Virus record (IMG/VR): IMGVR_UViG_3300033984_000473
Coordinates: 168,932 to 232,931 of that record
DNA: 64,000 bases
Direction: 5' to 3' (one strand)
Shown: positions 7,269-59,083 of the stretch, one piece after another
Numbering within the stretch: the stretch's first letter is position 1
Layout: each line of letters opens with the position of its first letter
The notes under the pieces: generated by a model
The model's input: the letters and a program-made list of their open reading frames with translations, nothing else
Databases searched by the model: none
Told to the model about the DNA's origin: nothing
Translations under genes and position numbers: made by a program

Positions 7269-7415
7269 TAGACAACAAGATTAACTTTTTTCTTTTTCGT
7301 GCTCTAACCATTAAGCTAACCGCCCAGTGTCTTAGGACAGTATGGGACTCGAACCCATATCACGAGCTTAACAGGCTATAGATTTTTTGTTGCTGAAATA
7401 ATCTTTCAATGTCTA
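7269..7415 (-). ncRNA. circularly permuted tRNA-Asn mimic (Y RNA/YrlA-like; CWGCAA family E1)
   Basis: Order: AAGATTA-TTTCAGCAA, GC-CTGTTAA-GC anticodon hairpin, T arm, acceptor 3' strand, 9-nt linker, acceptor 5' strand, D arm, TAATCTT. Confidence 0.7.
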
Positions 7416-7459
7416 GTTACAAACTAAGCAATTTCTCACTTAGCTTATATTTTTGGGTA

Positions 7460-8095
7460 TTATTTTCCTTGTCCAGAAACGTTAATTGACCCTACTGAAC
7501 CAGCTTTAGCTCTTTCGATACCAGCAGCTCTTTCAGCATCTAATTGTAAATACAATTTAGTTACTTGTTCACTTAAGAACTCGTTTTGGTTAGCCAACGT
7601 ACCAATCTTAGCAGCGTTTTCAGCAGCAATAGCTTTATTCTCTGAGTGAATCAATTTGATTTCATTCTCGTATTGAGATTTAAGGCTAGAAACTACCGTA
7701 GCAACTTCTTTTTTGATTAATCCATCAGTGTTAGACTTAACCTCGTCTAACTCTTTACGCAATGAACTCAATTCACTAGCTGGAATTACTGTTTTCCCAA
7801 CGCTTGTTAAGTATTCATTAACAACACGGTCTGTGTTAGCTCTGAAACTTAAATCTAAATCAACTTTCAATTGACGCTCTTTTTCAGCAAAAGCTACATC
7901 TAATGATATAATCGCTTCTTCTTTGTTAGCAACTTGTAAAGTTAATTCTTCAGCTTGCTCAACCATTTTATTGATTGTGTTAGTGGCAGAAGCTAATTCG
8001 CTTACTGCTTTCGTAATTTGTTGTGCAGCTTGTCCTAAGACAATCTCTGTGCTAGCACTTGCTTTCTTTGCGGGTGTTGTTTTTGTTACAGCCAT
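7460..8095 (-). CDS. coiled-coil hypothetical protein
   Basis: 211-aa ORF with promoter at ~8172. Confidence 0.75.
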   Translation of the reverse strand: MAVTKTTPAKKASASTEIVLGQAAQQITKAVSELASATNTINKMVEQAEELTLQVANKEEAIISLDVAFAEKERQLKVDLDLSFRANTDRVVNEYLTSVGKTVIPASELSSLRKELDEVKSNTDGLIKKEVATVVSSLKSQYENEIKLIHSENKAIAAENAAKIGTLANQNEFLSEQVTKLYLQLDAERAAGIERAKAGSVGSINVSGQGK

Positions 8096-8262
8096 TTTTT
8101 TTTTCTTTGTTTTTTTGTTTATTATGTTATTATGTTATTATGTTATTGTATTATTCTCTACTTATTATACTACAAAGATACTACATTTTTCATTAAAAGT
8201 CAAGTAAAAATGAATATTTTTTTAATCTTTTTTACACTTTTAATAAGCTGTAAATCAAGCTG

Positions 8263-8625
8263 TTACCCAGCCAAATACATACTATTTGACATCAACGCAT
8301 GTCTTGCAAAATCGGTCTCATCTTGGACGTATTCATTGAACTCAGATTGCTCTAATTCAACTATGTCTTCGACTTCCCAATTGAACATATCAATGATTTT
8401 GTCATAGTTATTGCTGTTGTCAACTGGTGTTGTTAAATCTAATCTAACTTTCATATCTCCAGCTTCAACTTTTTTGGTAATGTCTGCTAATTGTTTAAGT
8501 GCTTCTTTCTTGTAAGCAACAACGGCTTTGGTATAAGCTTCAATGTGTTGTGCTTTATTTTCTTGAATCTTAGCAATTAAATCTGCTTTGTTAACCTTGA
8601 TGGTTCTGTTTCCGTTTCTTCTCAT
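8263..8625 (-). CDS. hypothetical protein
   Basis: 120-aa ORF. Confidence 0.7.
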   Translation of the reverse strand: MRRNGNRTIKVNKADLIAKIQENKAQHIEAYTKAVVAYKKEALKQLADITKKVEAGDMKVRLDLTTPVDNSNNYDKIIDMFNWEVEDIVELEQSEFNEYVQDETDFARHALMSNSMYLAG

Positions 8626-8646
8626 TGGAATTTATTTTTACGTATG

Positions 8647-9024
8647 TTATTGTATGATATCTCCGACTTCAACATTTAAGAACAAATCCTCATCAATGTC
8701 TTTTTTAATCGTTAACGTTTCGTTAGGCCTTTTGATTGTAATGTAGTTGTCTTTTAAATCTGCTTTTTCGTTTTCTGAACGACAATTAGCACAATCTTTA
8801 TTTACAACAATACCGACTGGTAATTTAGTTTCAGAACTTGACCAATAACGCTTATCAGCTACCTTAACGTCACTTTCTGTAGGTTCGTCTTGATTGCGAT
8901 AATCAGAAGAATCTGAAAGGATTACAGCATCATAAGTTTCAACGTTTTCTGTTGGTTGTTCAGTTTTAGGTTTACATGAAACAGTTAAACCTAAAACCAA
9001 AGCTACTAAAAACATTTTTTTCAT
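8647..9024 (-). CDS. lipoprotein
   Basis: Signal peptide with lipobox LTVSC. Confidence 0.75.
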   Translation of the reverse strand: MKKMFLVALVLGLTVSCKPKTEQPTENVETYDAVILSDSSDYRNQDEPTESDVKVADKRYWSSSETKLPVGIVVNKDCANCRSENEKADLKDNYITIKRPNETLTIKKDIDEDLFLNVEVGDIIQ

Positions 9025-9197
9025 TATGTTCTACTTTTTAGAACTTCAATTTCTTTGTTGATTCTTTTGATATCAGAATCATTCAAAGGAACTTTAACGT
9101 CAGTTGTTTTCTTTTGTGTTTTCACACCACTTTTTAATTGCTTCTCAAGCATTTCGATTACTCTAGACTGTCTAGAACGTTTTGCAGCTGTTGCCAT
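9024..9197 (-). CDS. small basic protein (57 aa)
   Basis: MATAAKRSRQSRVIEMLEKQ...VLKSRT; stop overlaps the next start. Confidence 0.6.
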   Translation of the reverse strand: MATAAKRSRQSRVIEMLEKQLKSGVKTQKKTTDVKVPLNDSDIKRINKEIEVLKSRT

Positions 9198-9214
9198 AGT
9201 TAAATTTATTTATT

Positions 9215-9322
9215 TGTAGATGGTACAGGATTCGAACCTGTGAATCTCTTTGTATAGGTATCATACATACCACATCAAGACTTTATGTATGCTCAACCTT
9301 AAGCCACTCGGTCAACCGTCTA
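9215..9322 (-). ncRNA. atypical tRNA-like RNA (class II-like D arm, enlarged anticodon arm)
   Basis: T arm ACAGG TTCGAAT CCTGT; D loop GAGTGGCTTAA; CATAC/GTATG stem encloses a 16-nt loop. Confidence 0.5.
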
Positions 9323-9445
9323 TTTAATGAGAATTTGGGCCATCGGTATCTCATAATTGTTAGTCCTTCCTTAGCTAACACCCTTACCCAAGCCGTTCCT
9401 ATGGGCTGGTAAATTTCACTATACTATAGGAGTCAAGTGAATACT

Positions 9446-9521
9446 TGGTGGTACCGAGTGGATTCGAACCACTGACACCCGCATCTTCAGTGCGGTGCTC
9501 TACCAACTGAGCTACGGTACC
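9446..9521 (-). tRNA. tRNA-Phe(GAA)
   Basis: Canonical cloverleaf, loop CTGAAGA, encoded CCA. Confidence 0.95.
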
Positions 9522-9665
9522 TTTTTATCTCGTAGTTTTTAAGGCTCAAGTGATTACATTGCTGCTCACTCTAAGTAACCGTGATATAGTACAAACCTAT
9601 GATATTTCTATACTACAAAGATACTAATCTTTTTTTAAAGTTGCAACCTTTGTATCGTTTTTTTT

Positions 9666-10151
9666 TTAACTTTTTCTAGCTAAAATATACTCATATTGTG
9701 AGTCAGTATTTGTATTGCCATATACATAGTTTGGAATTCTAGTTAAACACATGTCTTCTAGAACTTTATCCAATGGACAACCTTCACCATATTCAAAATA
9801 GATAGCACCATATTCAACATAGCTCTCATCAGAATCAAAAGCTTCAACTTCGTTGATATCTCTAACATTTATGTTTTCATCACTGATAACACAAATTGAT
9901 TCATAACCTTTTCTATATTTAAAAGCACCTATTTGCTCAAATAACCCTTTACCAATTATGTATTCATCTTCTTTTGATAAATCTGGAACTACAACCATGT
10001 ATTCACATTCCAATAAGTCTTTGTGACTATATAGACCACCTTTGAATTCAACTGTTTGTATATTAAATTGGTTAAGGATTTGGCGAACTCTAGTAACCAC
10101 ATCTGGGTTAGCTCTATTAGACTTCGCCAAATAAACCTTTGGTATGTTCAT
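9666..10151 (-). CDS. hypothetical protein
   Basis: 161-aa ORF ending YEYILARKS. Confidence 0.7.
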   Translation of the reverse strand: MNIPKVYLAKSNRANPDVVTRVRQILNQFNIQTVEFKGGLYSHKDLLECEYMVVVPDLSKEDEYIIGKGLFEQIGAFKYRKGYESICVISDENINVRDINEVEAFDSDESYVEYGAIYFEYGEGCPLDKVLEDMCLTRIPNYVYGNTNTDSQYEYILARKS

Positions 10152-10498
10152 TATTTCTTACCTTTGGTAGCTGGAGCCTCGTCAGCAAACCATTCATCAT
10201 AGATTGATTGTGCTTCCACAAGTTGAACTTCTTTCAAAGCTAAATCCATTTTTGTTCTGTGTAATTCAGCCACCCATTTAGCAGCGTTGAAATCAGCACC
10301 ACCTGGACGTAGAGAGTAAGTGTTCTCTGGAGCCAAGTCAGTCAAGTCATTTAACTTGCTATTCAATTGCAATTTCTCTTTTCTTAGGTTTGCGATGAAA
10401 GACTCAACTTCCAATACGGCAGCATCTGCTAAATTTTTCGCTCTGTTTCCTAATGTTGCTGAACTATCCGCTGATAGCATTTGTGCAAATTTACTCAT
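10151..10498 (-). CDS. hypothetical protein
   Basis: 115-aa ORF with promoter at ~10545. Confidence 0.7.
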   Translation of the reverse strand: MSKFAQMLSADSSATLGNRAKNLADAAVLEVESFIANLRKEKLQLNSKLNDLTDLAPENTYSLRPGGADFNAAKWVAELHRTKMDLALKEVQLVEAQSIYDEWFADEAPATKGKK

Positions 10499-10595
10499 AA
10501 TTTTCTAGTTTTAAATTAAATTGTTTTTGTTTATTTTTTAGATTACAAAGGTATGAAATGTTTTTGACCTGTGCAAGTTTTTTTTAAAGTTTTTT

Positions 10596-10751
10596 TTAGT
10601 CGAGGTAAATATCAAACCATTCAACAGCGTAGAAGTCTAACCACATTCCCATTTCTAAATAGAATTGGAAAATTCTCTCGTCTCCACCGATTTCCATACG
10701 TAGTTTCTCTATGATGTAATCGGCCATGTATTGTAATATCTTTCTTTTCAT
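10596..10751 (-). CDS. small protein (51 aa), probably on a leaderless mRNA
   Basis: MKRKILQYMADYIIEK...DIYLD; ATG 4 nt after TACCTTTG. Confidence 0.6.
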   Translation of the reverse strand: MKRKILQYMADYIIEKLRMEIGGDERIFQFYLEMGMWLDFYAVEWFDIYLD

Positions 10752-10778
10752 AATACAAAGGTACTAATTAGTTTTTTA

Positions 10779-11305: not shown

Positions 11306-11380
11306 TGTTGAGGAAGAGGGACTTGAACCCTACTCTACCACCCGTCTAGGTGGTCTTCTAACCAGTTAAAGTATTCCCCA
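11306..11380 (-). ncRNA. degenerate tRNA-like gene with 6-nt anticodon loop
   Basis: Cloverleaf with CCACC-TAGACG-GGTGG; anticodon not assignable. Confidence 0.5.
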
Positions 11381-11467: not shown

Positions 11468-11588
11468 TGCAGCGGCACCAGGAATCGAACCTAGAACAAT
11501 GGCGTGACAGGCTATATTGAATGCTGAACGTAATCTTCTTAATCAGATTAACTTTTTTAACATTGTTATACCATTTAACTATACCGCT
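11468..11588 (-). ncRNA. tRNA-Asp(GTC)-like RNA with inserted CWGCAA-family module (E2)
   Basis: Normal acceptor, D and T arms, G73; anticodon arm carries AAAAAAGTTAATCT..AAGATTACGTTCAGCA..TATAGC CTGTCAC GC. Confidence 0.7.
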
Positions 11589-11590
11589 AG

Positions 11591-13968: not shown

Positions 13969-14048
13969 AAGATAGTTTTGTGGGATTGAACCACTTAGTT
14001 TTGTGTATGAGACAAAATTTTAACCGTTTTGTTTGCAGTAACTATCTT
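13969..14048 (-). ncRNA. CWGCAA-family tRNA mimic with CAT anticodon arm (E3)
   Basis: AAGATAGTT/AACTATCTT stem replaces the acceptor; TTACTGCAA; TTTTGT-CTCATAC-ACAAAA; T arm GTGG TTCAATC CCAC. Confidence 0.7.
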
Positions 14049-17062: not shown

Positions 17063-18274
17063 TTAAATGTTAGTTGCCGAGATTGGCAAGTTATAGAAAT
17101 CTCTTCTTATTGTTACTAAAAGTGCATCTACTAATCCTGGGTTTACCTTGTTTGGTAAATCAGATTTATCAAATACCTCGTCCATATTTGCTATGGCTTC
17201 ATCGGCCATGACAATCAACCCATCTAAATCAACTTCACCACGTCTAATCTTAAGAAGTTCTTCAGCATCTGGTCGTCTAACGATGATACCTTTACCTTCT
17301 CCGATTTCTGTAGCCATATTGATAAGTCGCATACAATGCATCATGTTCTTACCATCAATCTTTTGACCATGACCTTGAACTTCAACGTATCTGGTTACAT
17401 TTCTTTTATCTAACCATTCTTGGTATTCTTTAAAGTCTTTACAGTGCTCTGAATAACCATCTTTGTTATAAACGATTGTACTGATTGTTTTTTCACCTTT
17501 AGGAATACTAGAAAGACGTAGTTGATTTGAGATACCATAGTTAATGACCCCATCTTCATCTTCATGACCAGTGTTTACAAGTCCTTTATATCCAAGACCC
17601 ATTGGCTTACCAGCATCTTTTAGAACAGCCTTTCTTTGGTTGCGTTCTACTTCTGAAAATTTATCAGAGTGACACATTTCACCAACACTGTCATAAAATA
17701 AAGCATACGTATCCCTAGCGTTAGGTATGTTTACAGCACCTATGAATTTTTCATCGTACTTCCCAGAGTTCCATATTTTCCATGGAATTGATTTCTCACC
17801 TTCAAGTACATAACAGAAATCCAATAGGTCTTTACGAACTACTTTGTCCTGTTCCCAGTTTTGTTTCTTGTTAAGTCCTTTGGCTTTTTTGATTTGCTGT
17901 CTAGCGTAACCACCGAAAGAATCTTTACACGCTTTGGTGATGAAATCTTCCTTGTGAGCAATGATAATGTCAAACAAAGGGTTCTTTGTGACGATACAAT
18001 CTTCTGGACTGTTAAGGAGCTCAAGAACAGTTGGGTTGTTTGTACTCATAAGTTCTAAGAACCTTTTAAGTTCCCAACCCGTCCAATCTTTATTGATATT
18101 CAACTGTTCAACATATCCAGTACCCAAGATATTATCAATAGGCAAGATGTAAACGAATTTTTTATCCACATCAGACGTTGGTGTCTGCGTACCATAGGCT
18201 TGACTACCAATAATGCATTCAAAAAGAATCAATCCATTCTCTTTAAGGTAATCGTATGTAATTTTCTGTGTCAT
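17063..18274 (-). CDS. Pol-beta superfamily nucleotidyltransferase (YcgL/RlaP-like)
   Basis: GSQAYG..SDVD, NPTVLE, KNMMHCMRL. Confidence 0.85.
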   Translation of the reverse strand: MTQKITYDYLKENGLILFECIIGSQAYGTQTPTSDVDKKFVYILPIDNILGTGYVEQLNINKDWTGWELKRFLELMSTNNPTVLELLNSPEDCIVTKNPLFDIIIAHKEDFITKACKDSFGGYARQQIKKAKGLNKKQNWEQDKVVRKDLLDFCYVLEGEKSIPWKIWNSGKYDEKFIGAVNIPNARDTYALFYDSVGEMCHSDKFSEVERNQRKAVLKDAGKPMGLGYKGLVNTGHEDEDGVINYGISNQLRLSSIPKGEKTISTIVYNKDGYSEHCKDFKEYQEWLDKRNVTRYVEVQGHGQKIDGKNMMHCMRLINMATEIGEGKGIIVRRPDAEELLKIRRGEVDLDGLIVMADEAIANMDEVFDKSDLPNKVNPGLVDALLVTIRRDFYNLPISATNI

Positions 18275-18357
18275 ATTCTTAATTTTTAACAAAGGTATGT
18301 ATAATTTATTAAACTACCAAACATTTTTACATTTTAATTCCAGTAAGATAGATAAAT

Positions 18358-23330: not shown

Positions 23331-24623
23331 TTAATTTCCTATCTCAACCAAATGAGATACAGTACATTGTGAAGAATTATACACGATGTATTCGTTATTT
23401 TTTAAATCAGCACCACCTTTGGCAAATACAGAATCATAATCATCTTTTTTCAAGGCTGTGTGTGATAATGAATAACAACTAGAAGTATGATGAAGGATTT
23501 CCTTTTGATTACCCAAATGTACATCAAACAATGCTAAGAAAGCTTTATCATCACCACCTTTGGTCCAATAAGAACCTCTCAATGATGAATAACCGATTGA
23601 TTTCTGAGCTTTATCGGCAAAATAGATTCCATCTCCAAACATAGAACCAGTATGAACTGCACCAGAAGGTCTGATAAGTAACCCAGTTTGTAAAATGTTA
23701 AACCAGTTCTCATTTCTAGAACCATGCCAGTAAAGTCTTCTTTTCTTAACCTTAGCAGTTTCATAGTTCTTATCAAATATTTTTTGGGTTTTATTATTAA
23801 CCACCTTGAATACTCTTTTGACTTGATGTGCGTTAGGTCCCATAAGTTTCGTAACCAAAGCAAGTGTTTCTTTATCTTCCTCAACTTCAACACTAAGACC
23901 CATTTGGTCAAGTATAGTAACTTGGTCAACATGTTCTTCTTCTGGAGCTTCAGCTATTGCTTTTTGTTGTTTAAGTAGTTGTACTTGTCCAGCCATTGTA
24001 TCTAGTGTAGATTGTTCTTGACCAATGAATTTCTGAGCATTTTCAAGTGCTTTGGCATCATTAATTTCGTTTACAAGGTAATCACGTACATTATCCATTC
24101 TTCTAGGGATAATTGTATATAATTTAAGTAACATATCATTAACCAATTTCTTATCCACATCTAGAACCATGATAGCACTAATTCTATCTATGATTTCTTG
24201 GGCGGCAAGTACTTGTTGCTCAGATACAGCATCTTGCGTTACTTTATAATTTCTTTGAATAGATTTGTTTGCAAATGACATTAATTCATCGATAAGCTTT
24301 TTAACAGCTGAGTTTTTGATTTCTTCAGTTTTTTGTGCAGTCGCTGCTTTGGTTGCATCGTCAATAACTGGTTCTGCTAGGAATTCAGTTACATCAGTAT
24401 AACCTTTTTTATCAGAAGTTTTCTCTCTAAGGATTTTATCCCATTCATGTCTAGATTTGAATACTGTAGTCATATTTTTACCTACTCTACCATATTCACA
24501 TTGTATTCTACCATCGGAAAGTTCTTCCATGATATAAACCTTGTTACTATTGTCGGTCATTCCGTTATCAATAGAAACATGTACTAATTTAGCGTATCTT
24601 AAACCGTTTTCTTTTGTTATCAT
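23331..24623 (-). CDS. poly(ADP-ribose) polymerase (WGR + regulatory + catalytic domains)
   Basis: YGRVG, LYTIIP, WHGSR, MFGDGIYFAD..KS.GY, NEYIVY (H-Y-E triad). Confidence 0.9.
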   Translation of the reverse strand: MITKENGLRYAKLVHVSIDNGMTDNSNKVYIMEELSDGRIQCEYGRVGKNMTTVFKSRHEWDKILREKTSDKKGYTDVTEFLAEPVIDDATKAATAQKTEEIKNSAVKKLIDELMSFANKSIQRNYKVTQDAVSEQQVLAAQEIIDRISAIMVLDVDKKLVNDMLLKLYTIIPRRMDNVRDYLVNEINDAKALENAQKFIGQEQSTLDTMAGQVQLLKQQKAIAEAPEEEHVDQVTILDQMGLSVEVEEDKETLALVTKLMGPNAHQVKRVFKVVNNKTQKIFDKNYETAKVKKRRLYWHGSRNENWFNILQTGLLIRPSGAVHTGSMFGDGIYFADKAQKSIGYSSLRGSYWTKGGDDKAFLALFDVHLGNQKEILHHTSSCYSLSHTALKKDDYDSVFAKGGADLKNNEYIVYNSSQCTVSHLVEIGN

Positions 24624-31323: not shown

Positions 31324-32448
31324 TTAAAGCATTTTATATAATAATTTATCATCGTATTTAAACATAAATGTTTCAACCGATTCTACTTTTCCTTCAGCCA
31401 ATCCAAAATACAATCCTGTGAATTGTTTTAAGTCTTGTTTACCACATACTTCAAACACAGCTTCGGCATATTTCTTTTTTTCAGATGCCATTATGTTTTT
31501 TGGTTTACGTAGTTTCAACTCATCCCACAATACATTCAATTTTACAACCAAAGCATCGTAAGATTCTTTTAACTTATAAAGTTCCTCTTTTCTTTCTGGA
31601 AAGGTTGAGGCGAATTCTTCTATCTCATTGGTTTTAACGATTGTAAGTATGTTGTGTTCAGCAGTTTTACCTTTTAAGTGGTGAACTGCCAAGTAAGCTG
31701 GGTTTTTTATCTTAACACGGTTAAAATTAGCATCCACAACAACGTAACCTTCTTCCGACCATGGCATACCTTCAAATGTACGTAACAAAGCACCCACATC
31801 TTTGGCATTCAAATCAAACTTTTTAACCAATGGCAGTCCCAATGATATAGCAGCCATTTCTAAGTCTTTTCCAGATAATTCTTCTAGAGTTTCTCTGTTT
31901 CTGATTGTAAGGATAGTAGCTGATGATTCACCGTGTGGTTTAACCACTATATTGTATGGAGTAGTTAACTCGAATACGTATATATGGTTTTTATCTAGTA
32001 AACAATCGTTGAAACCGTACTTGTTATTCACAGTATCCCAGAATAGGTCATTAAATGTAGTACCCATCTTGTTATTTACCTCTCCTTCACCCTCTGCTGT
32101 ACCAGTAGTACCAGCAAACCATGTTTTTTTGTTCCAATCCCAGTATGCTTGTATAAGAGTACCATCTAATTTCTCTAGAACACTAGCAGTATTCCAGTCA
32201 ATCTTAGCAGCGTTACCCTCTTGTGAGTTAAAAAACTTTCTAAAAGCCAATGACATTACCTTCCATGTATCCATTTCAAGTATAAGACCACGAGAATCTT
32301 GCATTTCTGGCAACGCCATAAGTGTTGGCGACACTAATTGGTCATATTTTAAAAGTATTTTACCGTCATACTCTCTAAATTTCAATTTAAAGTCTGATAT
32401 TGTTTTTGATATCCCGTTTTTTCTGATATATTCTTGTATTGCTAACAT
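31324..32448 (-). CDS. RNA ligase (T4 Rnl1-like)
   Basis: RGLIL..FRKFFN..EKLDGT, FEL, EGYVV, KIK..Y. Confidence 0.9.
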   Translation of the reverse strand: MLAIQEYIRKNGISKTISDFKLKFREYDGKILLKYDQLVSPTLMALPEMQDSRGLILEMDTWKVMSLAFRKFFNSQEGNAAKIDWNTASVLEKLDGTLIQAYWDWNKKTWFAGTTGTAEGEGEVNNKMGTTFNDLFWDTVNNKYGFNDCLLDKNHIYVFELTTPYNIVVKPHGESSATILTIRNRETLEELSGKDLEMAAISLGLPLVKKFDLNAKDVGALLRTFEGMPWSEEGYVVVDANFNRVKIKNPAYLAVHHLKGKTAEHNILTIVKTNEIEEFASTFPERKEELYKLKESYDALVVKLNVLWDELKLRKPKNIMASEKKKYAEAVFEVCGKQDLKQFTGLYFGLAEGKVESVETFMFKYDDKLLYKML

Positions 32449-45368: not shown

Positions 45369-46529
45369 TTATTTGTTTAATAATTGTTTAAAGTTTTCAG
45401 TTTCCATTTGTTGAATCCTTTGACCCAACTCTGGTCCAGGTTTTAAGTCTGTATCCATCATTACTTCTGGTCCCGTAACTGTTAACTGAAACTTTAAGAA
45501 TGCGTCTAATAACTTAGAGTCAATTCCACGCAATTTGCCAAACATTTTAATCTGCTCTGGAGTTACACCAGCGTGCTTCTCAGCTTTTTTAAGTGTTACA
45601 GCTGTATCTACTGATAATTGTAACAAAGCAATTAAAAATGTTATTGCTTTTACTTCTTCTGCTGAGTATTTCAAGTTGTTTAGTTGTTTTCTCAAAGAAT
45701 CTAAGTTGTTTCTTTTCAATATCGTAGCAATTACGATTATTGGGTCGTTATTCTCAACAAAATCCTTATCAACTGCCAATCCATTGAAAACCCAGTCGAA
45801 CAATTTGTAACCATCAATCATTTGTAAGAATTTCTTAACCGATTTTGCCGAAGCAATACCTTTAAGGAATTCATCACGAATTCTCTCACCAGAAATACCC
45901 TCAAGACTAGCATCTTTAACCAACGCAGCGTGTGTATCTGGGTCTAAGTCACTTCCGAACCTTCCAGCAAATCTAATCGCTCTAAGGATACGCAAACGGT
46001 CTTCACCAAATCTATCTTCAGCAGCACCTACAGTTCTTACTATACCTTTTTTAAGGTCATCTACACCACCAACTAGGTCAACTATTTCATGTGTATCAAT
46101 ATCGTAAAACAAAGCGTTAATTGTAAGGTCACGTCTTTTAACATCACCAGCGATATCCGTAAAGCTAACAGCATCTGGTCGTCTACCACCAGACAAATCT
46201 TCACGGAATGTTGCCACTTCGTATTCGCCTTGGTCTGTAAACACATTGATTACACCAAAAGACTTACCTGTTGGTAAAGTTTTCAATCCAGCGTGTTTCA
46301 TCATTTCTTCTACTTTGTCTGGGACAGCATCGGTTGCTAAGTCGTAATCTTTAGGAGTTTTACCTAACAAAGCATCACGCACAGCACCACCTACAACATA
46401 CAACTTAAAACCGTTCGTTTTAAAAACGTCTTTGATTCCTTGTATATCTTCTGGGATTGGAATATCGAATTTGATTCGCTGTTCCATTATCTGCCCTTCT
46501 CTTAGTATTTGTCTAATCTCATTTTTCAT
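45369..46529 (-). CDS. cca: CCA-adding tRNA nucleotidyltransferase
   Basis: VGGAVRD..KDYD, RRDLTINA, EDRLRILRAIRF, ERIRDE. Confidence 0.92.
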   Translation of the reverse strand: MKNEIRQILREGQIMEQRIKFDIPIPEDIQGIKDVFKTNGFKLYVVGGAVRDALLGKTPKDYDLATDAVPDKVEEMMKHAGLKTLPTGKSFGVINVFTDQGEYEVATFREDLSGGRRPDAVSFTDIAGDVKRRDLTINALFYDIDTHEIVDLVGGVDDLKKGIVRTVGAAEDRFGEDRLRILRAIRFAGRFGSDLDPDTHAALVKDASLEGISGERIRDEFLKGIASAKSVKKFLQMIDGYKLFDWVFNGLAVDKDFVENNDPIIVIATILKRNNLDSLRKQLNNLKYSAEEVKAITFLIALLQLSVDTAVTLKKAEKHAGVTPEQIKMFGKLRGIDSKLLDAFLKFQLTVTGPEVMMDTDLKPGPELGQRIQQMETENFKQLLNK

Positions 46530-49166: not shown

Positions 49167-49241
49167 TGTAGTTCTAGTCGGACTCGAACCGACATTTCTC
49201 CGTTTTAGAGGCGGGCGTATTCACGTTAATACTATAGAACC
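49167..49241 (-). tRNA. amber suppressor-type tRNA (CTA)
   Basis: Loop CTCTAAA; anticodon stem has two C-A mismatches; D loop lacks GG; own promoter at ~49252. Confidence 0.75.
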
Positions 49242-51078: not shown

Positions 51079-51757
51079 TTATGAGAGTAAATCAATTTTA
51101 CCTCGGAGTATGTCTTTAAGACTAGCTGTCTTATTAGTTATGTGGTCTACAACCAAAGAATCTTTAACTCTATATGTTCTACGTTTGTCGCTTCTATCAC
51201 CTTTGCCGATTTGGTCTCTTCGCTCTTCTACGCTTTCTTCTAAGTGTCCAGTTCTATAAAAATCATTCACACGCTTTTTAAGCTCTTTTAAGGCATCTTC
51301 TTTGTTCTTGTGTTGATTTCTACCATCACGAACTACTTTTAACCCTGTGGTGATGTGTGTGACCACTACGCATGAATCTGTTGTGTTCTTGTGTTGTCCA
51401 CCGTTCCCAGTCCCTCTAGTTGTTTCTAAACGATATTCGCTGGGATATAGTTCTATCTCTTGATAATCGTTTTCTTCCATAAGGGCTACTGTAATTGAAC
51501 TGGTATGAACACGTCCCTTCTTTTCAGTTGGTGGGACTCTTTGCCAACGATGATTTCCTACTTCATTCTGGAATATCTCTTTTACCTTTGGGCCGCTAAA
51601 GACATAGATGGGCAAAGCCGCTTCTTTCTTCGACTACGCTGCATTCTAAATTGTTAAGTCTTGCCGTTTTGGTGTAGATGTCAAGCATCTCTTTCACCAA
51701 CAGCTTCGCATCTGTTCCACCTTCCGCATCACGGATTTCTAAATGAATTTTTCCCAT
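51079..51757 (-). CDS. RF1-type peptide release factor lacking domain 1, split by a +1 frameshift at CTT-TAG-C
   Basis: Frame 0 MGKIHLEIRDAEGGTDAKL...CL* (51757-51596); +1 frame ..HRWQRVPPTEKKGRVHTS..GGQHKN..RRTY. Confidence 0.85.
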
Positions 51758-51783: not shown

Positions 51784-51810
51784 AAAAAACCCCATCGATT
51801 GATAGGGCTT
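51784..51810 (-). terminator. terminator upstream of the RF gene
   Basis: AAAGCCCTATC-AATC-GATGGGGTTTTTTT. Confidence 0.7.
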
Positions 51811-51820
51811 TGATGATTTC

Positions 51821-51883
51821 AGAATAGCATGGTTTTTCTTTTTTTTCGTTAAATAGATTTTTTTAAATTGCTGTAACTATTCT
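51821..51883 (-). ncRNA. CWGCAA-family small RNA (E4)
   Basis: AGAATAG-TTACAGCAA...CTATTCT. Confidence 0.55.
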
Positions 51884-52046: not shown

Positions 52047-52094
52047 AGAATCAATTTTTTTCCTATATAAAGAGTTAATTGCTGCAATGATTCT
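52047..52094 (-). ncRNA. CWGCAA-family small RNA (E5)
   Basis: AGAATCA-TTGCAGCAA...TGATTCT. Confidence 0.55.
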
Positions 52095-52174: not shown

Positions 52175-52425
52175 TTATCTCAAAATGGTTGTTTGTTTTT
52201 TTCATCCCAGCGGATTAACCCTTTTTACGTCTTCGGCTTTGCTTTGGCGAGAGTCTACTGTTGTTCGACTACATCCTACTTGCACCTTTTGGGGTGGTTG
52301 ACGTTTGCTTAATTTTTTATACTGGTTAAACTTCCATTTACCATTGAAGAGCGATACTATCACTGTTCGTTTTTGGTTTTCATAGCTGTGTCTGTTTTTG
52401 TTGCAGAACCCATTTTTCTAGATAA
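52175..52425 (-). ncRNA. CWGCAA-family RNA, large (E6)
   Basis: TTATCT..AAAATGG-GTTCTGCAAC...CCATTTTG AGATAA; directly after a TATCTTTG promoter. Confidence 0.55.
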
Positions 52426-52537
52426 TGTAAGAACGTTTTCAAATAAATATACACAAAGATACTAAATATTTATCTCCGTGTCAAGTTTTTTTTCATTTAT
52501 TTTTAAGAAATTTTAAAAACCCAGTAAATACAGGGCC

Positions 52538-53245: not shown

Positions 53246-53365
53246 AATATTGTTTTTATATATAAATATACAGAAAACAAAAAACCCTCAACAAAGCGAT
53301 TTGTTAAGGGTTGTAATTTCTATCCTAAAGGTGAGCTAGGAAGAATCAAAATTGAATGTTTAAAG

Positions 53366-53722
53366 AGGAGCATACGGGAATCGAACCCGTGTGTTGAATA
53401 TTCTTCAAAAGCTTTCTACATGTTTATCCAATTCATTAACTGGCAATCTTTACTACATCTTTTTACCGTGTAATTTAAGCTTCACACCAATGGATTACCA
53501 TCATTCACTAAATTATTAGTATCAAGTGGTTTACCACTATTTGCTTCATTTAGACTGTAGCTAACTCTCCTGTTGAAACCATTACAGCTTCGTTAAGGAA
53601 ATTTTCTGAGACGATAAAATCGTTGTCAATTCAATGTTTTAATAGACAGATTAAAGTGCTTCCAATCTAGCACTACATGCTTACCAATTACGACTATACT
53701 CAGTCAATACCTTGGATGCCCC
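53366..53722 (-). ncRNA. ssrA: tmRNA
   Basis: GGGGCAT..TTGAC 5' end, T arm and ATGCTCC 3' end with G3:U70; tag frame 53627-53550 (A)DNDFIVSENFLNEAVMVSTGELATV*. Confidence 0.9.
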
Positions 53723-55524: not shown

Positions 55525-55773
55525 TTAAAGGAAAAATTTTATGAAGTCCTTATTTTCTTCCATCACTTCATCAATCATCGGCCTAAGTTTTTTAATGATT
55601 TTACTCCTTATAGCATCATCTTTAAAATACCAGTCATGCTTAATATCATCCCAATACCAAGTTGTAGTACGGTCTTCGGCTTTATGATGGTCCCAATTAG
55701 TTTCTGTCTTACTTTTTAACTCAACATTTTTTATTATATCAGTTAGAAAGTCTTTGAATGATTCTTTATCCAT
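55525..55773 (-). CDS. hypothetical protein
   Basis: 82-aa ORF. Confidence 0.55.
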
Positions 55774-56782
55774 TCATAACTTCTTTAAGGTTGATTATTG
55801 CAGCTTTTTCCTCATCGGTTAGTTTTTTAGGTATATCTAAACCTAATATGATAATCATATCACCTCTAGAATCTTTACCATACGGTTTAACGCCTTTAAA
55901 GGGTATTTTAAGGTTCGCACCCACATCACTATGCTCTGGAATACTAATTCTTATTTTACCACCCTCTATGGTCTCTATTTCGACTTTATCACCTAGAACC
56001 ATTTGTGGGTAACTTAATTTAAGGTTTAGTTTTAAATCACCACCAACACGTGTAAAAATCTTATGTGGAAGTTCCATTATTTTTATATGTAAATCACCTT
56101 CTCTTCCAGATTTAACACCATGACCTTTTCCAGTCATTACAAACACAACACCTTCTGGGACACCAGCTGGTATTTCAACTTCAACCGTTTCTGCAACGCT
56201 TTTAACACCACTACCCTTGCATGTACCACATGGTTTGGTGTATCTCTTACCAGTAGCACCACATGATTGACATGGTATTGTTTGTTGAATATGACCCATA
56301 GGTGTATTATAGATTTGATTTACCATACCCCTACCATTACATACCCCACAATCATGAACATCAGTACCACCATGACCATCACAGTCATCACAACTTACCG
56401 TTCTATTGTATTTGTATGATTTTTTTACACCTGTATAGATTTCTTCTAGTGTTAATTTAACAATTAGACTCATATTATTACCAACTCTATTGTTTTGGTT
56501 AAAACTTTGTCCAAAATGTTGGTTGAATTGGTCATACATGTCTCGCATACTACTGACACCACCTTGTGAGTGGCCAAATCTATCGTATTTTACTTTTTTA
56601 TCTGAATCAGATAGTACTTCATAGGCTTCAGAAACCTCTTTAAACTTTTCTTCAGCATCTTTATCCTCTGGATTCACATCTGGGTGTAGAGCTTTTGCTA
56701 ATTTTCTGTATGATTTCTTAATTTCATCAGTAGTAGCACCTTTTGTTACACCTAAAACCTCGTAATAATCCCTTTTACTCAT
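55766..56782 (-). CDS. dnaJ: DnaJ chaperone
   Basis: J domain HPD, four CxxCxGxG repeats, C-terminal domain. Confidence 0.95.
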
Positions 56783-56840
56783 AGTTAGTATTTATTTTTA
56801 TACAAAAGTACGTAAATTAATTGAAATATACAAATTTATT

Positions 56841-57497
56841 ATGGTTTTTAGAGTGATTTTAGTTTCTAATGGGGAATATAAGAAGACATTACATAGATGT
56901 AAGAGTCGGGAAACCGCATTTATTAACTTTCATGCGTTATTGGAACAAAATAATGTAATGTACCCTAGAAAATTCATTAATTCTAAGGGTATCAAACTAG
57001 TTAAATATACAATATGTATATCTAAGGTTACAGAAGAAGGTGATACCTTTAGAACTCTTAGGGATGACTATGGTAAATTATATACCGAACAACCTCTAGG
57101 TGATTGGACCATATTGCATTCAGATGAATATCAAGTAGAAGAAACATTTTGGTTATATGGGTTAGAACCTAAAAGTGTTAGACCTACGATTACCGATGTT
57201 GTTAAAAGATTAATGATTGGTGTTCACGCTAAGAAGATGGTGAAACAAATAATAGTTGTCCATAATAAATTAGTTATTTATAATGAGGACCAATTTGATA
57301 TGGTTATTTGTAAAAACTTAGAAGATGCACAAAGGTTACACCATACCCTTGCAAAGATTGCTAAGAAGCAAAAGATTAAAAGCTTATTATTTATGGGTAC
57401 AGCAACTCCAGCTACTGTTAGTAGAATGTATGACCTTATTCATGATGAAACTGGTTGGCCATATACCAAAATAAGAAGAACAAGTACTAGACCCTAA
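56841..57497 (+). CDS. hypothetical protein
   Basis: 218-aa ORF. Confidence 0.75.
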   Translation: MVFRVILVSNGEYKKTLHRCKSRETAFINFHALLEQNNVMYPRKFINSKGIKLVKYTICISKVTEEGDTFRTLRDDYGKLYTEQPLGDWTILHSDEYQVEETFWLYGLEPKSVRPTITDVVKRLMIGVHAKKMVKQIIVVHNKLVIYNEDQFDMVICKNLEDAQRLHHTLAKIAKKQKIKSLLFMGTATPATVSRMYDLIHDETGWPYTKIRRTSTRP

Positions 57498-57516
57498 TAC
57501 TTGTTCCTTTATTGTT

Positions 57517-57720
57517 TTAGAATAAACCTTCTAGTAATACAACTAATTCAGCAATTCTTTTATCGTTACGAGCGATTATTTCTTCCATATGTTGTGGTAT
57601 GTTACCAACATGGTGAGATTTTATTTTTGAGTTTTCTCTTTGTAGTAATTCGCTTTCTCTAATGCATGCATCGTAAATAATACCTTTTTCTTCGTTACTC
57701 ATGTTCTGTGTGTTTTCCAT
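57517..57720 (-). CDS. hypothetical protein
   Basis: 67-aa ORF. Confidence 0.55.
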   Translation of the reverse strand: MENTQNMSNEEKGIIYDACIRESELLQRENSKIKSHHVGNIPQHMEEIIARNDKRIAELVVLLEGLF

Positions 57721-58180
57721 TTTTAAATCTATTTTCTATTTTTTCCAAATACTCACCAATATTGTTTTCGTTTACAGTGGTATCTCTTGTTATTTTAAAA
57801 ATTCTACGTTCAATTAAATTTTGTATTCTTACCACACCATTATGTTCTTCTGGTGAACTATTAGCATAAACGTGAATTTCATTTATTGGATATTTCTCAT
57901 CAATAAATATCGTGTAATTACCTAATAGTTTAACCGATTTAATAAATCTATGTAATGTTAAATTTTTTATTAATTTTTCGTAGAGTGATGGGTGAACACC
58001 TATCGTATCCAAATTTAAACCTTCATCGTCATAGTTAATTACTCTTGCTAAATTATCTATGATTCTTAATAAATTGTCATTCCAACTTTCTTGTGTTGAA
58101 AATAATTGGAATTCTCTTAAAGATTCTGGGGTTTCAGTCCAACCTAAATAATCCCAGTTAACCTTAAATTTACGTGCCAT
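57695..58180 (-). CDS. hypothetical protein, possible degenerate capsid C-terminal fragment
   Basis: TQESWNDNLL..IGVHP..LLGNYTIFID..P.N. Confidence 0.55.
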   Translation of the reverse strand: MARKFKVNWDYLGWTETPESLREFQLFSTQESWNDNLLRIIDNLARVINYDDEGLNLDTIGVHPSLYEKLIKNLTLHRFIKSVKLLGNYTIFIDEKYPINEIHVYANSSPEEHNGVVRIQNLIERRIFKITRDTTVNENNIGEYLEKIENRFKNGKHTEHE

Positions 58181-58182
58181 AA

Positions 58183-58530
58183 TTAATCACATTTGCATTC
58201 ACCACCTGGATTATTACCACAATCACAAGGTTTTGGGTCTAGTTCAACTTCTTCATCTTCTACTTCAATATCCATCCCAATTGCAAAGCTAGTTTTGATA
58301 TCTTCAACCATTTGATTGATTTTTACCATATCCGCTTCTGCGATAATACTTGGGTTGATACATTCTACTCTTTCTTCACCTTGTGTTGGTAAAAAGAATG
58401 CTAATGCGTTTGCATTTTTATGTGCTAGCATGTTGTTGATTGATTCAGCAAATGGCTGAATAATTTCTTTCATTTTCATCATTTCTGCATCTAAATAGAA
58501 TACGATGATTAAAGGGTAACCTTGTTCCAT
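58183..58530 (-). CDS. hypothetical protein
   Basis: 115 aa, Cys-rich tail. Confidence 0.7.
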   Translation of the reverse strand: MEQGYPLIIVFYLDAEMMKMKEIIQPFAESINNMLAHKNANALAFFLPTQGEERVECINPSIIAEADMVKINQMVEDIKTSFAIGMDIEVEDEEVELDPKPCDCGNNPGGECKCD

Positions 58531-58533
58531 AAT

Positions 58534-58857
58534 TTATTTTAAGTTAATTTGTTCGGAGTAATCGGAAAAATTTATTTCATCAATCACTTCTGTTATCATG
58601 TTTTTATTAGAGCTACGAAAATCATCACACTCGAAATGTTCAAATAATAATCTATTAACCATTTCTGATTTTGCTGATTCACCAAATACTGTGTGTGCTT
58701 CTATCATTTTACCATCAGCTAATCTGACATAAATTATGTATTCTGAAACAACTCTATCTTTGTTTATAGAGCTCATTAATCTATCGATTTCTTTTATAAC
58801 AATTCTTTTCATTCTTCTATTCTTTAAATATACTGTTAGTTTTATTTTTATAAACAA
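58534..58857 (-). CDS. hypothetical protein
   Basis: ORF track. Confidence 0.55.
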   Translation of the reverse strand: MFIKIKLTVYLKNRRMKRIVIKEIDRLMSSINKDRVVSEYIIYVRLADGKMIEAHTVFGESAKSEMVNRLLFEHFECDDFRSSNKNMITEVIDEINFSDYSEQINLK

Positions 58858-58925
58858 TAATAGACAAAATTTTTGAATGTGTAAAGTATAAAAACAAAAA
58901 AAGCCTCTAAAAGAGGCGATTTTCT

Positions 58926-59083
58926 TACTTATTTACAAGATGCGGGGGCGTTTTTTTCTTCTAACCCTGTTATGAAGCTTTCCCATTAAAAAAATTGTTA
59001 GAGGATTGGGTTCCTACAGTTGTTTAAGTTTGATTAAGTTTTTTTGTGTTTTGTTGCAGAATACACCTTTAATCAAATAAGTA
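58926..59083 (-). ncRNA. CWGCAA-family RNA (E7) directly downstream of the Ro60-like gene
   Basis: TACTTATTT..AAGGTGT-ATTCTGCAAC...GCATCTT..AAATAAGTA. Confidence 0.6.

Follow-up and report, generated by a model that had tools for sequence, protein, structure and literature searches.

The minus strand of the window (the whole 64-kb stretch of DNA, from a large phage, that was analyzed) carries a dispersed family of small RNAs, each with a short helix followed by a CWGCAA motif. These are probably trans-acting RNAs of the Y RNA type, in which a common protein-binding handle is combined with different cargos; the proposed partner is the Ro60-like DUF2828 protein encoded in the same window.

The Small RNA Family and Its Handle

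The family is confirmed. An earlier note on this DNA had proposed seven minus-strand copies of a helix with C(A/T)GCAA, and all seven were found on that strand when the sequence was read. They lie at or inside the ranges proposed, which had included a few flanking bases. Each copy has a 7-bp helix, a spacer of 3-4 nt and then CWGCAA, which is replaced by CAGCAT in copy 2. The helix pairs quoted in the note are correct: they differ in sequence between copies and are still complementary, and orthologs from related phages retain the helix through compensatory changes.

Across the family, the handle is a helix of 6-8 bp that usually pairs the RNA's 5' and 3' termini. It starts with (A)AG and ends with CU, followed by G. 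After the 5' strand come 2-3 unpaired bases, then a single-stranded CAGCAA (CUGCAA in some members), and A-rich linkers flank the handle on either side.

Taken alone, a loose pattern that combines any 7-bp helix with 2-5 nt and CWGCAW does not stand out, with 12 matches on the minus strand of the window and 8 on the plus strand. The strict pattern requires a 3-nt spacer, CWGCAA, a helix that starts with A-R and ends with T then G/T, and at most one G-U pair. It matches six times on the minus strand and never on the plus strand, while 40 dinucleotide shuffles of the window gave a mean of 0.55 matches (maximum 3). The six matches are copies 1, 3, 4, 5 and 6 and a candidate extra element at 6251-6362; the filter excludes copy 2, which is looped and has CAGCAT, and copy 7, which has two G-U pairs. 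A covariance model (R1) was made from the small copies in related contigs. It scores copies 5, 4 and 3 at 56.7, 50.6 and 30.7 bits, respectively. The long-cargo copies have no R1 match, which is expected because the model has the length of the short copies.

The Seven Copies and Their Cargos

The cargos differ between copies, as had been proposed, and are tRNA-like, minimal, pseudoknotted or a large domain. Over the whole family they range from nearly nothing through a T-arm hairpin, permuted tRNA-like bodies and pseudoknotted domains to a domain of roughly 240 nt. All of the following features are on the minus strand.

Copy 1 (7277-7405; sequence read, strict pattern match) has the helix AAGATTA/TAATCTT, the spacer TTT and CAGCAA at 7395-7390. 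Its cargo is a permuted tRNA-like body, with a T arm, an acceptor-like stem with an 8-nt closing loop, and then a D arm. The YrlA model aligns to it over its full length at 7269-7393, with a sub-threshold score of 24.7 bits (gathering score 69). Copy 2 (11470-11588) is a tRNA-like RNA (Rfam tRNA, 42.3 bits; no call by ARAGORN) that carries the module in looped form: TTAATCT (11551-11545), a loop, AAGATTA (11537-11531), CGTT and CAGCAT (11526-11521). Here a loop connects the helix strands, so that the module occupies the place of the anticodon loop and is circularly permuted relative to the other copies. The minus strand of the window has no other hairpin-plus-CAGCAN of its kind.

Copy 3 (13969-14048; strict pattern, R1 E-value 8e-5) lies directly 3' of tRNA-Val, and similar elements are found in the related loci L011 and L012. 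It has AAGATAG/CTATCTT, the spacer TTA and CTGCAA, and its cargo contains a T-arm-like hairpin (GTGGTTCAATCCCAC). Copies 4 and 5, both matching the strict pattern, are minimal. Copy 4 (51821-51883, 63 nt) starts 5 nt past tRNA-Met. It has AGAATAG/CTATTCT, the spacer TTA and CAGCAA, and is composed of UUACAGCAA, an A-rich loop and a CUG tail. Copy 5 (52047-52094, 48 nt; UUGCAGCAA) has AGAATCA/TGATTCT, the spacer TTG and CAGCAA.

Copy 6 (52182-52416, 235 nt; strict pattern match) has AAAATGG/CCATTTT, the spacer GTT, CTGCAA and a large conserved cargo, the core of which is present in 34 related loci (at least 24 distinct sequences). An Rfam scan of this cargo gave no match. Its closing helix covaries among the related loci (AAGATGG/CCATCTT, GGATCG/CGATCC, GGATAG/CTATCC). 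Copy 7 (58937-59069, 133 nt; sequence read) begins 54 nt past the stop codon of the DUF2828 gene, and thus indeed lies right after it, as had been noted. It has AAGGTGT/GCATCTT, with two G-U pairs, the spacer ATT and CTGCAA. The loop (GGGY) of an internal CTTC/GAAG hairpin forms a pseudoknot with an RCCC that immediately precedes the closing strand. Its 21 syntenic orthologs (alignment A3) were chosen without regard to pairing. In these, the closing helix is 97% paired, with two-sided changes at five of the seven pairs, and pseudoknot pair 174-194 changes from GC to AU in four sequences.

A hairpin with a T run at 51786-51811, directly after copy 4, was found by a terminator scan and would end a unit of copy 6, copy 5, tRNA-Gln, tRNA-Met and copy 4. 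Terminator-like sites number 10 in the region (3.4 in shuffles). A promoter-like site (TTGACA-17-TATCTT, 52456-52484; consensus scan only) just upstream of copy 6 is weak evidence because such sites are as numerous in shuffles of the region. Another terminator-like hairpin with a T run (58903-58917; terminator scan) lies 20 nt past copy 7, so that DUF2828 and copy 7 look co-transcribed. A hairpin and T run are visible after the element in nearly all loci that carry a copy 7 ortholog. Five of the seven copies are 6.7-52 kb away from the DUF2828 gene, and their linkage to it thus exists only at the genome level.

The Ro60-like DUF2828 Protein

The gene at 59124-60560 (minus strand) codes for a protein of 478 aa with the Pfam domains DUF2828 and DUF7788. 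The earlier suggestion that it is Ro60-like is supported by structure modeling. In a Foldseek search with the AlphaFold model (pLDDT 76), the sole full-length matches are Ro60/TROVE structures (9kop, 9l5y, 2i91), with E-values from 2.6e-9 to 3.8e-6 over about 495-530 aligned columns and about 14-18% identity. A DxSxS motif (D279, S281, S283), of a type that coordinates metal in vWA domains, is invariant in alignment A1. At the sequence level, the Pfam scan found no TROVE match at E<=0.01, and comparison with solved Ro60 chains gave only non-significant E-values (0.27-1.1). The window also encodes an Rnl1-type RNA ligase, RlaP and a CCA-adding enzyme, and in a Listeria phage the DUF2828 gene adjoins genes for RtcB and an RNA ligase. 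In the non-model phage Bas63, the Ro60-like gp130 is encoded upstream of tRNAs and counters ppl defence (PMC11482910).

Linkage of the Module to DUF2828

The association of the module with DUF2828 held up in the clade of the window, in seven cultured phage lineages and at most of 80 loci from bacterial assemblies. The earlier note had called for a covariance model and a co-occurrence check. At E<=1, 84 DUF2828 loci contain 99 R1 matches, of which 98 are sense to the gene; at E<=0.01, all 77 matches are on the strand of the gene. Up to 500 nt past the DUF2828 stop codon there are 58 matches, 22 of which start at 11-17 nt, and none were found upstream of the gene in 581 kb. The strict pattern, applied to 80 related loci, gave 85 matches on the strand of the gene and 6 on the opposite strand. 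In 0.82 Mb of viral DNA not selected for DUF2828, two R1 matches reach E<=1 and neither of them reaches E<=0.01.

Among cultured phages, elements lie upstream of DUF2828 in Listeria phage LP-064 (three) and Campylobacter phage CPX (two). They lie downstream in Staphylococcus phage 6ec (three, with no intervening tRNA), in mycobacteriophage Kingsolomon (three; the base composition of its host is quite different) and in the FelixO1-like E. coli phage Alf5 (four, among tRNAs just downstream). Klebsiella phage KP2025 has five elements beside DUF2828, and in Cronobacter phage S13 the module is directly beside it.

The 80 assembly loci have 195 sense and 12 antisense matches, compared to 2-6 in shuffles. 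An element is found within 1 kb of DUF2828 in 63 of the 80, and arrays are up to eight elements long, at a mean GC of 49%. The strict pattern found no element at the other 17, three of which have variants that were detected by eye (CAGCAG, different spacer). By the same pattern, a few viral loci have no element either (L030; Vibrio phage ValKK3, within 3 kb on either side). A scan of viral contigs with a 15-base pattern gave at least 118 stretches. Among the matches listed, 112 have no complementary strand, four are chance matches inside long ORFs and two are real elements, both with DUF2828 downstream (at 315 and 1604 nt).

Comparison with Known RNA Systems

A close parallel is Ro60 with its Y RNAs. 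As in YrlA and the phage phiLo system, a protein with a ring and a vWA domain has RNAs beside its gene on the same strand (PMC4201824, PMC12135203). In both, a terminal stem has a short conserved purine-rich motif adjoining on the 5' side. The second domain is variable and in many cases mimics a permuted tRNA, with a T arm, a closed acceptor stem and a D arm; several RNAs exist per protein, and RNA-repair genes are near. The Ro60 of Thermus phage phiLo binds gene-adjacent RNAs (Yrl1/Yrl2) with a terminal stem and a CGAA bulge (PMC12135203).

The phage RNAs are nevertheless distinct. YrlA and phage Yrl RNAs have GNCGAA/CGAA in a bulge beside the terminal stem (PMC4201824, PMC12135203), whereas the phage motif is CAGCAA and apparently unpaired, which bears out the earlier claim of a motif different from the canonical one. 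The YrlA model (RF02553) aligns CAGCAA to its Rsr-binding CGGCGAA segment. Scores of the tRNA-like cargos against this model (24.7-40.1 bits) are far under the threshold of 69. Many phage members have no tRNA-like part, arrays reach eight elements, and the tRNA-like body can be joined to the handle through the acceptor side as well as the anticodon side. The protein, too, differs from Ro60 in its Pfam assignment and low identity. Taken together, the comparison supports a Y-RNA-like set that would serve the Ro60-like protein, with CAGCAA replacing the canonical CGAA. Vault RNA and TEP1 are another RNA-binding system with a TROVE domain, in which a TROVE-type protein is bound to small structured RNAs. 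This third system with a protein of that kind is not known to be related to the phage system in sequence or gene order.

The dictyostelid Class I RNAs (RF01414) have a similar design. They are 42-65 nt long (PMC7919456), the small phage copies 48-69 nt. Both start with AAG and have a variable remainder and a CUGU end (PMC7919456, Rfam model consensus). The 11-nt Class I motif CCUUACAGCAA adjoins the 5' strand, and its invariant C6, C9, A10 and A11 correspond to C, C, A and A of the phage motif; invariant U3 has a partial counterpart (37% T at that position). Four small phage copies score 36.1 (copy 4; E 5e-5, 801 bases scanned), 34.1, 32.0 and 25.2 bits (copy 5) against the Class I model, all below the gathering score of 41.5, and the GC-richer members have no match to it. 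In contrast to the phage RNAs, the Class I family is eukaryotic and reported as unique to Dictyostelia, and a DUSE promoter of their own drives its genes. Direct binding to a Class I RNA is proven for one protein only, the RRM protein Rnp1A, which is not Ro60-like (PMC7919456).

Alternative Explanations

The module might be a processing signal. In anticodon loops of tRNAs (copy 2, Cronobacter S13) it would mark introns, and in permuted tRNAs (copy 1, KP2025, Kingsolomon) the junctions; a phage or host endonuclease and an RNA ligase would then cut and rejoin the transcripts into working tRNAs. In archaea and the red alga Cyanidioschyzon, tRNA genes that are permuted or contain introns are processed through bulge-helix-bulge motifs. 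The phage RNAs resemble such genes in having the 3' half before the 5' half, or an insert in the anticodon loop, with a common helix motif at the junction. The module takes a looped form within tRNA-like RNAs and an open form where permuted ones end, RNA ligases are encoded nearby, and an encoded CCA is present at the end of one S13 example. We still regard this reading as improbable. The phage motif is not a bulge-helix-bulge, most members (copies 4-7 included) have no tRNA halves, and by eye no sequence flanking a module would restore an anticodon loop of the normal 7 nt. No splicing scheme accounts for Clostridia-type loci, where the module takes the place of the acceptor stem, and YrlA, a known stable Ro60 partner, shares the permuted layout.

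Alternatively, the handle might be read by another factor (a host RNase, a chaperone or another phage protein), the nearness to DUF2828 then reflecting shared tRNA-rich regions. Several copies in the window flank tRNAs far from the DUF2828 gene, and tRNA arrays often neighbor DUF2828. This is unlikely, as the module abuts the gene with no tRNA between or nearby in Staphylococcus phage 6ec, Kingsolomon and many prophage-like arrays, and the 22 R1 matches that start 11-17 nt past the stop codon also argue against it. In phage T5, the first 50 kb include the annotated tRNAs and eight stable RNAs; this tRNA-rich DNA lacks DUF2828 and has no module and no significant R1 match.

We consider it very unlikely that the elements are cis-regulatory (leader or trailer structures, or autoregulatory operators, of the DUF2828 mRNA) rather than independent RNAs. 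They do share the strand of the gene and lie directly up- or downstream of it, often within one apparent transcription unit. Dispersed copies are, however, found as far as 52 kb away in tRNA operons, arrays reach eight elements with unrelated cargos, and the upstream or downstream position switches among lineages; autoregulatory binding would still make the elements DUF2828 ligands. Variable inserts between short inverted repeats, and loose-pattern matches on both strands, might suggest repeats at the DNA level (recombination sites, or miniature mobile elements whose ends are short and inverted) or mere chance. Both are extremely improbable: the repeat reading is contradicted by the strict strand bias and by helices that vary yet stay complementary, including G-U pairs possible only in RNA, and the asymmetric motif is kept across phages of four host phyla, with far fewer matches in shuffles.

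Proposed Mechanism and Significance

We thus favor Y-RNA-type small RNAs. The ring-shaped Ro60-like DUF2828 protein would bind the handle in the way that Ro60 recognizes a Y RNA by its stem and CGAA bulge, and the cargo may bring another factor or a substrate to it. The RNAs would be transcribed from tRNA operons or within the DUF2828 transcript and would probably be released by tRNA-processing enzymes. The role is probably in surveillance, repair or protection of tRNA or other RNA during infection, possibly against host defence. We found no description of such an RNA-protein particle in the literature. The presence of the module beside DUF2828 in many unrelated phages points to a widespread RNA-protein particle.

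RNAs with a Common Handle in the Window

Seven RNAs with a common layout are encoded on the minus strand: copy 1 (7277-7405), copy 2 (11470-11588), copy 3 (13969-14048), copy 4 (51821-51883), copy 5 (52047-52094), copy 6 (52182-52416) and copy 7 (58937-59069). Each carries a module, or handle, which consists of a short closing helix, a spacer of 2-4 nt and an unpaired CAGCAA (or CUGCAA); the sequence that it encloses is the cargo. The earlier note had described the order of helix, spacer, motif, A-rich run, cargo and complement, and reading of the sequence recovers this order in all seven copies. The 5' helix strand comprises 7 bp and begins with A-A/G-G or A-G-A. The spacer that follows measures 3 nt, except in copy 2 (4 nt), and precedes the motif, which is CAGCAA or CUGCAA (CAGCAU in copy 2). 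After the motif come an A-rich run, the cargo, a second A-rich run, and the complementary strand, which ends in U and is followed by G. The topology of copy 2 differs, as a 7-nt loop joins both helix strands and the module occupies the place of the anticodon loop in a tRNA-like RNA. Relative to copy 1, whose permuted tRNA-like body is closed by the module, copy 2 is circularly permuted.

A loose pattern (any helix plus CWGCAW) matches at chance level on both strands of the window and for this reason is unusable alone. Upon addition of the shared features, there are six matches on the minus strand and none on the plus strand, with a mean of 0.55 in shuffled sequences. When single sequences were folded, z-scores between -0.1 and -2.8 were obtained, a range that is indecisive in the case of A-rich RNAs. 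At gathering thresholds, Rfam reports only tRNAs in the window, and no Rfam 15 entry describes the RNA family. A near-identity search against cultured phages returned tRNA-sized matches only. A candidate eighth copy (6251-6362, minus strand; AGGGTAT / TTC / CAGCAA ... ATACCTT) overlaps the final 90 nt of an ORF and is not matched by the covariance model R1 (see below). Another candidate match (8377-8427) is located inside an ORF.

Copy 6 has as its cargo a conserved RNA core of ca. 240 nt (ACCACCCCAAWAGGTG, GTAGGATGTAGTCGAA, GTAGACKCTCGC, AAGCCGAAGAC, GGGTTAWTCCGC), which recurs in 34 related loci (L031:11500-11785 is an example). In one clade, the order is DUF2828 gene, small copy and core, in direct succession. 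The core belongs to no known family in Rfam.

Conservation and Covariation

The gene for the DUF2828 protein (59124-60560, minus strand) ends 54 nt before the start of copy 7. Its product was used to query viral contigs, which yielded 263 related stretches, of which 80 loci were kept. The closer relatives (L001-L028) have an element of 110-200 nt 3' of the DUF2828 gene, like copy 7. For copy 7, 21 orthologues were picked by position and end motifs, not by pairing. Their closing helix is 97% paired, and both sides change in five of the seven pairs. The alignment also supports an internal hairpin and a 4-bp pseudoknot, in which the hairpin loop pairs with bases immediately 5' of the closing strand; one pseudoknot pair goes from G-C to A-U in four sequences. 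Syntenic counterparts of copies 4, 5 and 6 recur, with helices that differ yet stay complementary.

The covariance model R1 was built from 27 small copies. These were themselves selected for pairing, so that the 100% pairing among them proves nothing alone. In the window, R1 finds copy 5 (56.7 bits), copy 4 (50.6 bits) and copy 3 (30.7 bits), with the next match at 17 bits; copies 1, 6 and 7 escape it owing to their long cargo inserts. The earlier note had proposed that a covariance model be checked for co-occurrence with DUF2828 genes, and the two do go together in the loci collected by way of this gene: across the 80 loci and four cultured-phage loci, R1 has 99 matches (E<=1), of which 98 are on the strand of the gene. 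Within 500 nt past the DUF2828 stop codon there are 58 matches, 22 of them at 11-17 nt. No match was found upstream of DUF2828 in 581 kb. As a control, viral DNA that had been retrieved for a different purpose (0.82 Mb) was scanned; R1 matched it twice at E<=1 but never at E<=0.01. Phage T5 has neither the module nor DUF2828 in its first 50 kb, which contain annotated tRNA genes; the CAGCAA module is absent from the eight "stable RNAs with unknown functions" among its tRNAs (RNAI, III, IV, 1, 2, 2H, 3 and X; L089, 28-42 kb). When viral contigs were scanned from the RNA side with AAGGCACCNACAGCAA, the result was swamped by chance 15-mers; two real elements are among the matches listed, and both adjoin DUF2828.

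The DUF2828 Protein

In the window protein, Pfam detects only DUF2828 and DUF7788 at E<=0.01; TROVE does not match at this threshold. Matches to solved TROVE chains in the PDB are not significant (E 1.1 with the single sequence, 0.27 with a profile). An AlphaFold model was computed from a 27-sequence alignment and is of moderate confidence (pLDDT 76, pTM 0.69). The top five Foldseek matches to this model are all Ro60/TROVE proteins, aligned over ca. 495-530 columns (nearly the whole length) with TM scores of 0.48-0.56. They include the Ro60 of Thermus phage phiLo, Xenopus Ro60 and a Ro60 cryo-EM structure, while isolated vWA domains are far behind. The model is helical up to about residue 262 and alpha/beta afterwards. 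D279, S281 and S283, a DxSxS motif of the metal-binding type in vWA domains, are invariant in the alignment. The predicted structure shows the architecture of Ro60, a helical-repeat ring followed by a vWA domain with DxSxS. The label given in the earlier note (Ro60-like, TROVE-vWA) is supported by the fold but not by the family, as a significant TROVE sequence match is lacking. "Ro60-like" is thus warranted by the predicted fold, not by family membership.

The DUF2828 family comprises 8,471 clusters at 50% identity. In mycobacteriophage records, members of the family already bear the name "Ro-like RNA binding protein". That the structure resembles Ro60 has been pointed out in the PhageMaP preprint, which also surmises that some of the adjacent "tRNAs" are Y RNAs.

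Linkage to DUF2828 in Other Lineages

According to tblastn, DUF2828 is encoded in 711 cultured phage records, every one with <60% identity to the window protein. By reading of the sequences, the module directly adjoins the DUF2828 gene in seven cultured-phage lineages. E. coli phage Alf5 has four elements among the tRNAs just downstream (AGACCNN / UUA / CAGCAA ... NNGGUCU-G). Klebsiella phage KP2025 has five, two of which carry permuted tRNA bodies, and Cronobacter phage S13 has two over-long "tRNAs" with a looped module and one permuted element. Elements are found upstream of the gene in Listeria phage LP-064 (three) and Campylobacter phage CPX (two), and downstream of it in Staphylococcus phage 6ec (three) and in mycobacteriophage Kingsolomon (three, the middle one having a permuted tRNA body). 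Vibrio phage ValKK3 has no element within 3 kb on either side of the gene.

A second sample consisted of 80 loci from bacterial and archaeal assemblies, with proteins mostly 37-55% identical to that of the window and a mean G+C of 49%. Here, 195 matches are on the gene strand and 12 on the opposite strand, compared to 2-6 in shuffles. In 63 of these loci, at least one element occurs within 1 kb; most form arrays immediately upstream of the gene, with eight elements at most. Among the 17 "empty" loci, inspection by eye revealed variants in three. In loci of the Clostridia type (L166:1986-2083, L125:1388-1484 and similar ones), some cargos are unpermuted tRNA bodies with D arm, anticodon arm and T arm. 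In these, the module helix replaces the acceptor stem, and CAGCAA is inserted before the D arm. All genomic sources identified for module RNAs are phages, viral contigs or bacterial assemblies.

Some further features of these loci were observed. (a) A cargo motif, ACUGCUAAUGA, is common to elements from phages of Klebsiella (L084:4842-4958), Mycobacterium (L088:6685-6740) and Campylobacter (L087:4799-4862). Base pairing of UGCU in this motif with AGCA in CAGCAA is conceivable. (b) In Listeria phage LP-064, a ROOL-like large RNA (L085:3471-4022; 87.4 bits, gathering score 99.1) is located between the tRNA array and DUF2828, and genes for RtcB and an RNA ligase are found downstream at this locus. 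(c) On a Nodosilinea chromosome, DUF2828 is flanked by a repeat, GTCCCCACTCG.TGGGGA.CCCAATTGAATGGAAAC (L111:1900-2500 and 3967-4500), copies of which resemble CRISPR repeats. Just downstream are a tRNA-like stretch and a small RNA with the module.

Translation and RNA Repair Genes of the Window

The window has a G+C content of ca. 33%, and nearly all genes are on the minus strand. ARAGORN predicts 31 tRNA genes. Also on the minus strand are the genes for the RNA-repair nucleotidyltransferase RlaP (17063-18292), a PARP-like protein (23331-24623), an Rnl1-type RNA ligase (31324-32448) and an enzyme of the CCA-adding/poly(A)-polymerase type (45369-46529). RNase HII, DnaJ, ClpP, a release-factor-like protein and a DNA ligase are encoded as well. 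This gene content indicates a large phage with a toolkit for translation and RNA repair.

A tmRNA-like gene (53363-53722, minus strand) scores 44.4 bits with Rfam (gathering score 47; E 2.7e-15), and the corresponding regions of L012 and L002, which are syntenic, have clearer tmRNA matches. The tRNA at 49168-49241 (minus strand), whose anticodon is CUA, is of the amber-suppressor type and is labelled Pyl by ARAGORN; an ORF with RF-1/PCRF release-factor domains is located at 51079-51615 (minus strand). Recoding of stop codons was considered and rejected, as the standard code already yields a dense gene map on the minus strand. Two more unusual tRNA genes are on this strand. The tRNA at 7063-7179 (Rfam 54 bits) has an insert of ca. 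46 nt, which holds a second T-arm-like hairpin and no CAGCAA, and is another kind of odd tRNA than copy 2. The tRNA-like gene at 11307-11380 has a four-base anticodon (AGAC) according to ARAGORN.

Proposed Function of the Handle

The handle is common to all members of the RNA family, and DUF2828 is the gene that always accompanies them. The simplest reading therefore is that DUF2828 binds the handle. By analogy to Ro60-Y RNA particles, the cargo would supply a second function. As judged from the looped form (copy 2 and phage S13), free ends would not be needed, so that the features recognised should be the helix and the unpaired CAGCAA next to it. tRNA-mimicking cargos would be joined via their anticodon side or, in arrays of the Clostridia type, via their acceptor side. 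Together with the neighbouring genes for RNA ligases, RtcB, RlaP and CCA-adding enzymes, such cargos may point to surveillance or repair of tRNAs, or to a decoy, during infection. A coliphage member of DUF2828 is reported to counter a bacterial defence system (PMC11482910), which fits such a role.

The arrangement of the copies suggests how they may be released. Copy 7 is located between the DUF2828 stop codon and a terminator-like hairpin. A promoter-like site precedes, and a terminator-like hairpin follows, the series copy 6, copy 5, tRNA-Gln, tRNA-Met and copy 4. As copy 4 begins 5 nt past tRNA-Met, cuts by RNase P and RNase Z would free small RNAs.

The module might instead be a signal for splicing or for the maturation of permuted tRNAs, but this accounts only for the minority of elements that bear a tRNA body. 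Moreover, no 7-nt anticodon loop can be drawn by eye for copy 1, copy 2 or the S13 examples, and ARAGORN makes no call on copy 2. If the handle were read by some other factor, its placement would not be explained, as the module adjoins DUF2828 even where tRNAs are absent. Purely cis-regulatory elements would leave the dispersed copies and the arrays unaccounted for. Neither DNA repeats nor chance can account for the strand bias or for covariation that includes G-U pairs.

Comparison to Y RNAs

In bacterial Y RNAs (YrlA, RF02553), a GNCGAA motif is part of the terminal stem and a tRNA-like domain is present in permuted order; their genes share the strand of the Ro60 gene and are no more than 4 kb away from it (PMC4201824). 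The Ro60 of phage phiLo binds two adjoining RNAs with a terminal stem and a CGAA bulge, and mutation of CGAA weakens binding (PMC12135203). The module RNAs have this position and strand relative to DUF2828, which is Ro60-like in fold only. A permuted tRNA domain (T arm, closed acceptor-like stem and D arm) within the terminal stem is shared by copy 1 and by elements of KP2025, S13 and Kingsolomon, whereas copies 3-7 are devoid of it. The YrlA model scores 24.7 bits for copy 1, 40.1 and 34.3 bits for KP2025 and 37.9 bits for Kingsolomon, all below the gathering threshold of 69 bits; these matches span the full model, with E-values from 0.085 down to 2e-5. In the model alignment, CAGCAA falls on the Rsr-binding segment. 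The Ro60-binding motif GNCGAA(N0-1)G (CGAA), as defined previously (PMC4201824, PMC12135203), is absent near the 5' end. As the earlier note had inferred, the motif differs from that of canonical Y RNA, with CAGCAA or CUGCAA standing at the place where GNCGAA is expected.

Comparison to Class I RNAs of Dictyostelium

Class I RNAs (RF01414) begin with AAG and end with CUGU, are 42-65 nt long, and have a 6-bp covarying stem that joins the ends, a CCUUACAGCAA motif by the 5' strand and a variable body (PMC7919456). Positions U3, C6, C9, A10 and A11 of CCUUACAGCAA are invariant (PMC7919456). The small phage copies have nearly all of these published features, including C6, C9, A10 and A11, while U3 has a weak counterpart (37% T). 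The RF01414 model scores 36.1, 34.1, 32.0 and 25.2 bits for copies 4 and 5 and their relatives, which is below the gathering threshold of 41.5; at E<=1, it has no match in the Listeria, Staphylococcus, Campylobacter and Mycobacterium phage loci. Class I RNAs occur in Dictyostelia and have a DUSE promoter, a eukaryotic promoter element, ca. 60 nt upstream. The same study reports none outside Dictyostelia (PMC7919456); they are regarded as a speciality of social amoebae that is linked to multicellular development.

It is tempting to speculate, although we consider it somewhat improbable, that Class I RNAs are eukaryotic members of the same kind of RNA and that their stem and CCUUACAGCAA form a putative binding site for DUF2828 (Ro60-like). 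DUF2828 and the CAGCAA RNAs would then represent a third ancient Ro60/TROVE branch across phages, giant viruses and eukaryotes. As mimivirus-like sequences and scaffolds and plants are reported to contain DUF2828, exchange of the DUF2828/CAGCAA system between viruses and amoebae is thinkable and could have occurred. Searches for a dictyostelid or other eukaryotic DUF2828 (word-indexed, language-model atlas and exhaustive HMMER) returned only phage and virus proteins among the best 120-150 matches. The dictyostelid protein DDB_G0281243, which might be a candidate DUF2828 partner of Class I RNAs, is given as "function unknown" in one preprint.

Implications

No description of the CAGCAA handle, the breadth of the family or the likeness to Class I RNAs was found in Rfam 15 or in the searched literature. 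Many unusual "tRNA" calls, whether over-long, permuted or lacking an anticodon, are accounted for by the module, as are unannotated gaps in the tRNA regions of phages. DUF2828 is a very large phage family, which includes phages of Listeria, Staphylococcus, Campylobacter, E. coli and Salmonella. A defined candidate RNA ligand turns DUF2828 into a testable particle with a short handle that can be mutated, and the natural cargos, many of them tRNA mimics, hint at the target of this particle. If the link to the amoebae were true, it would provide a candidate protein partner and an evolutionary origin for the Class I RNAs, which have long been studied but are mechanistically opaque.
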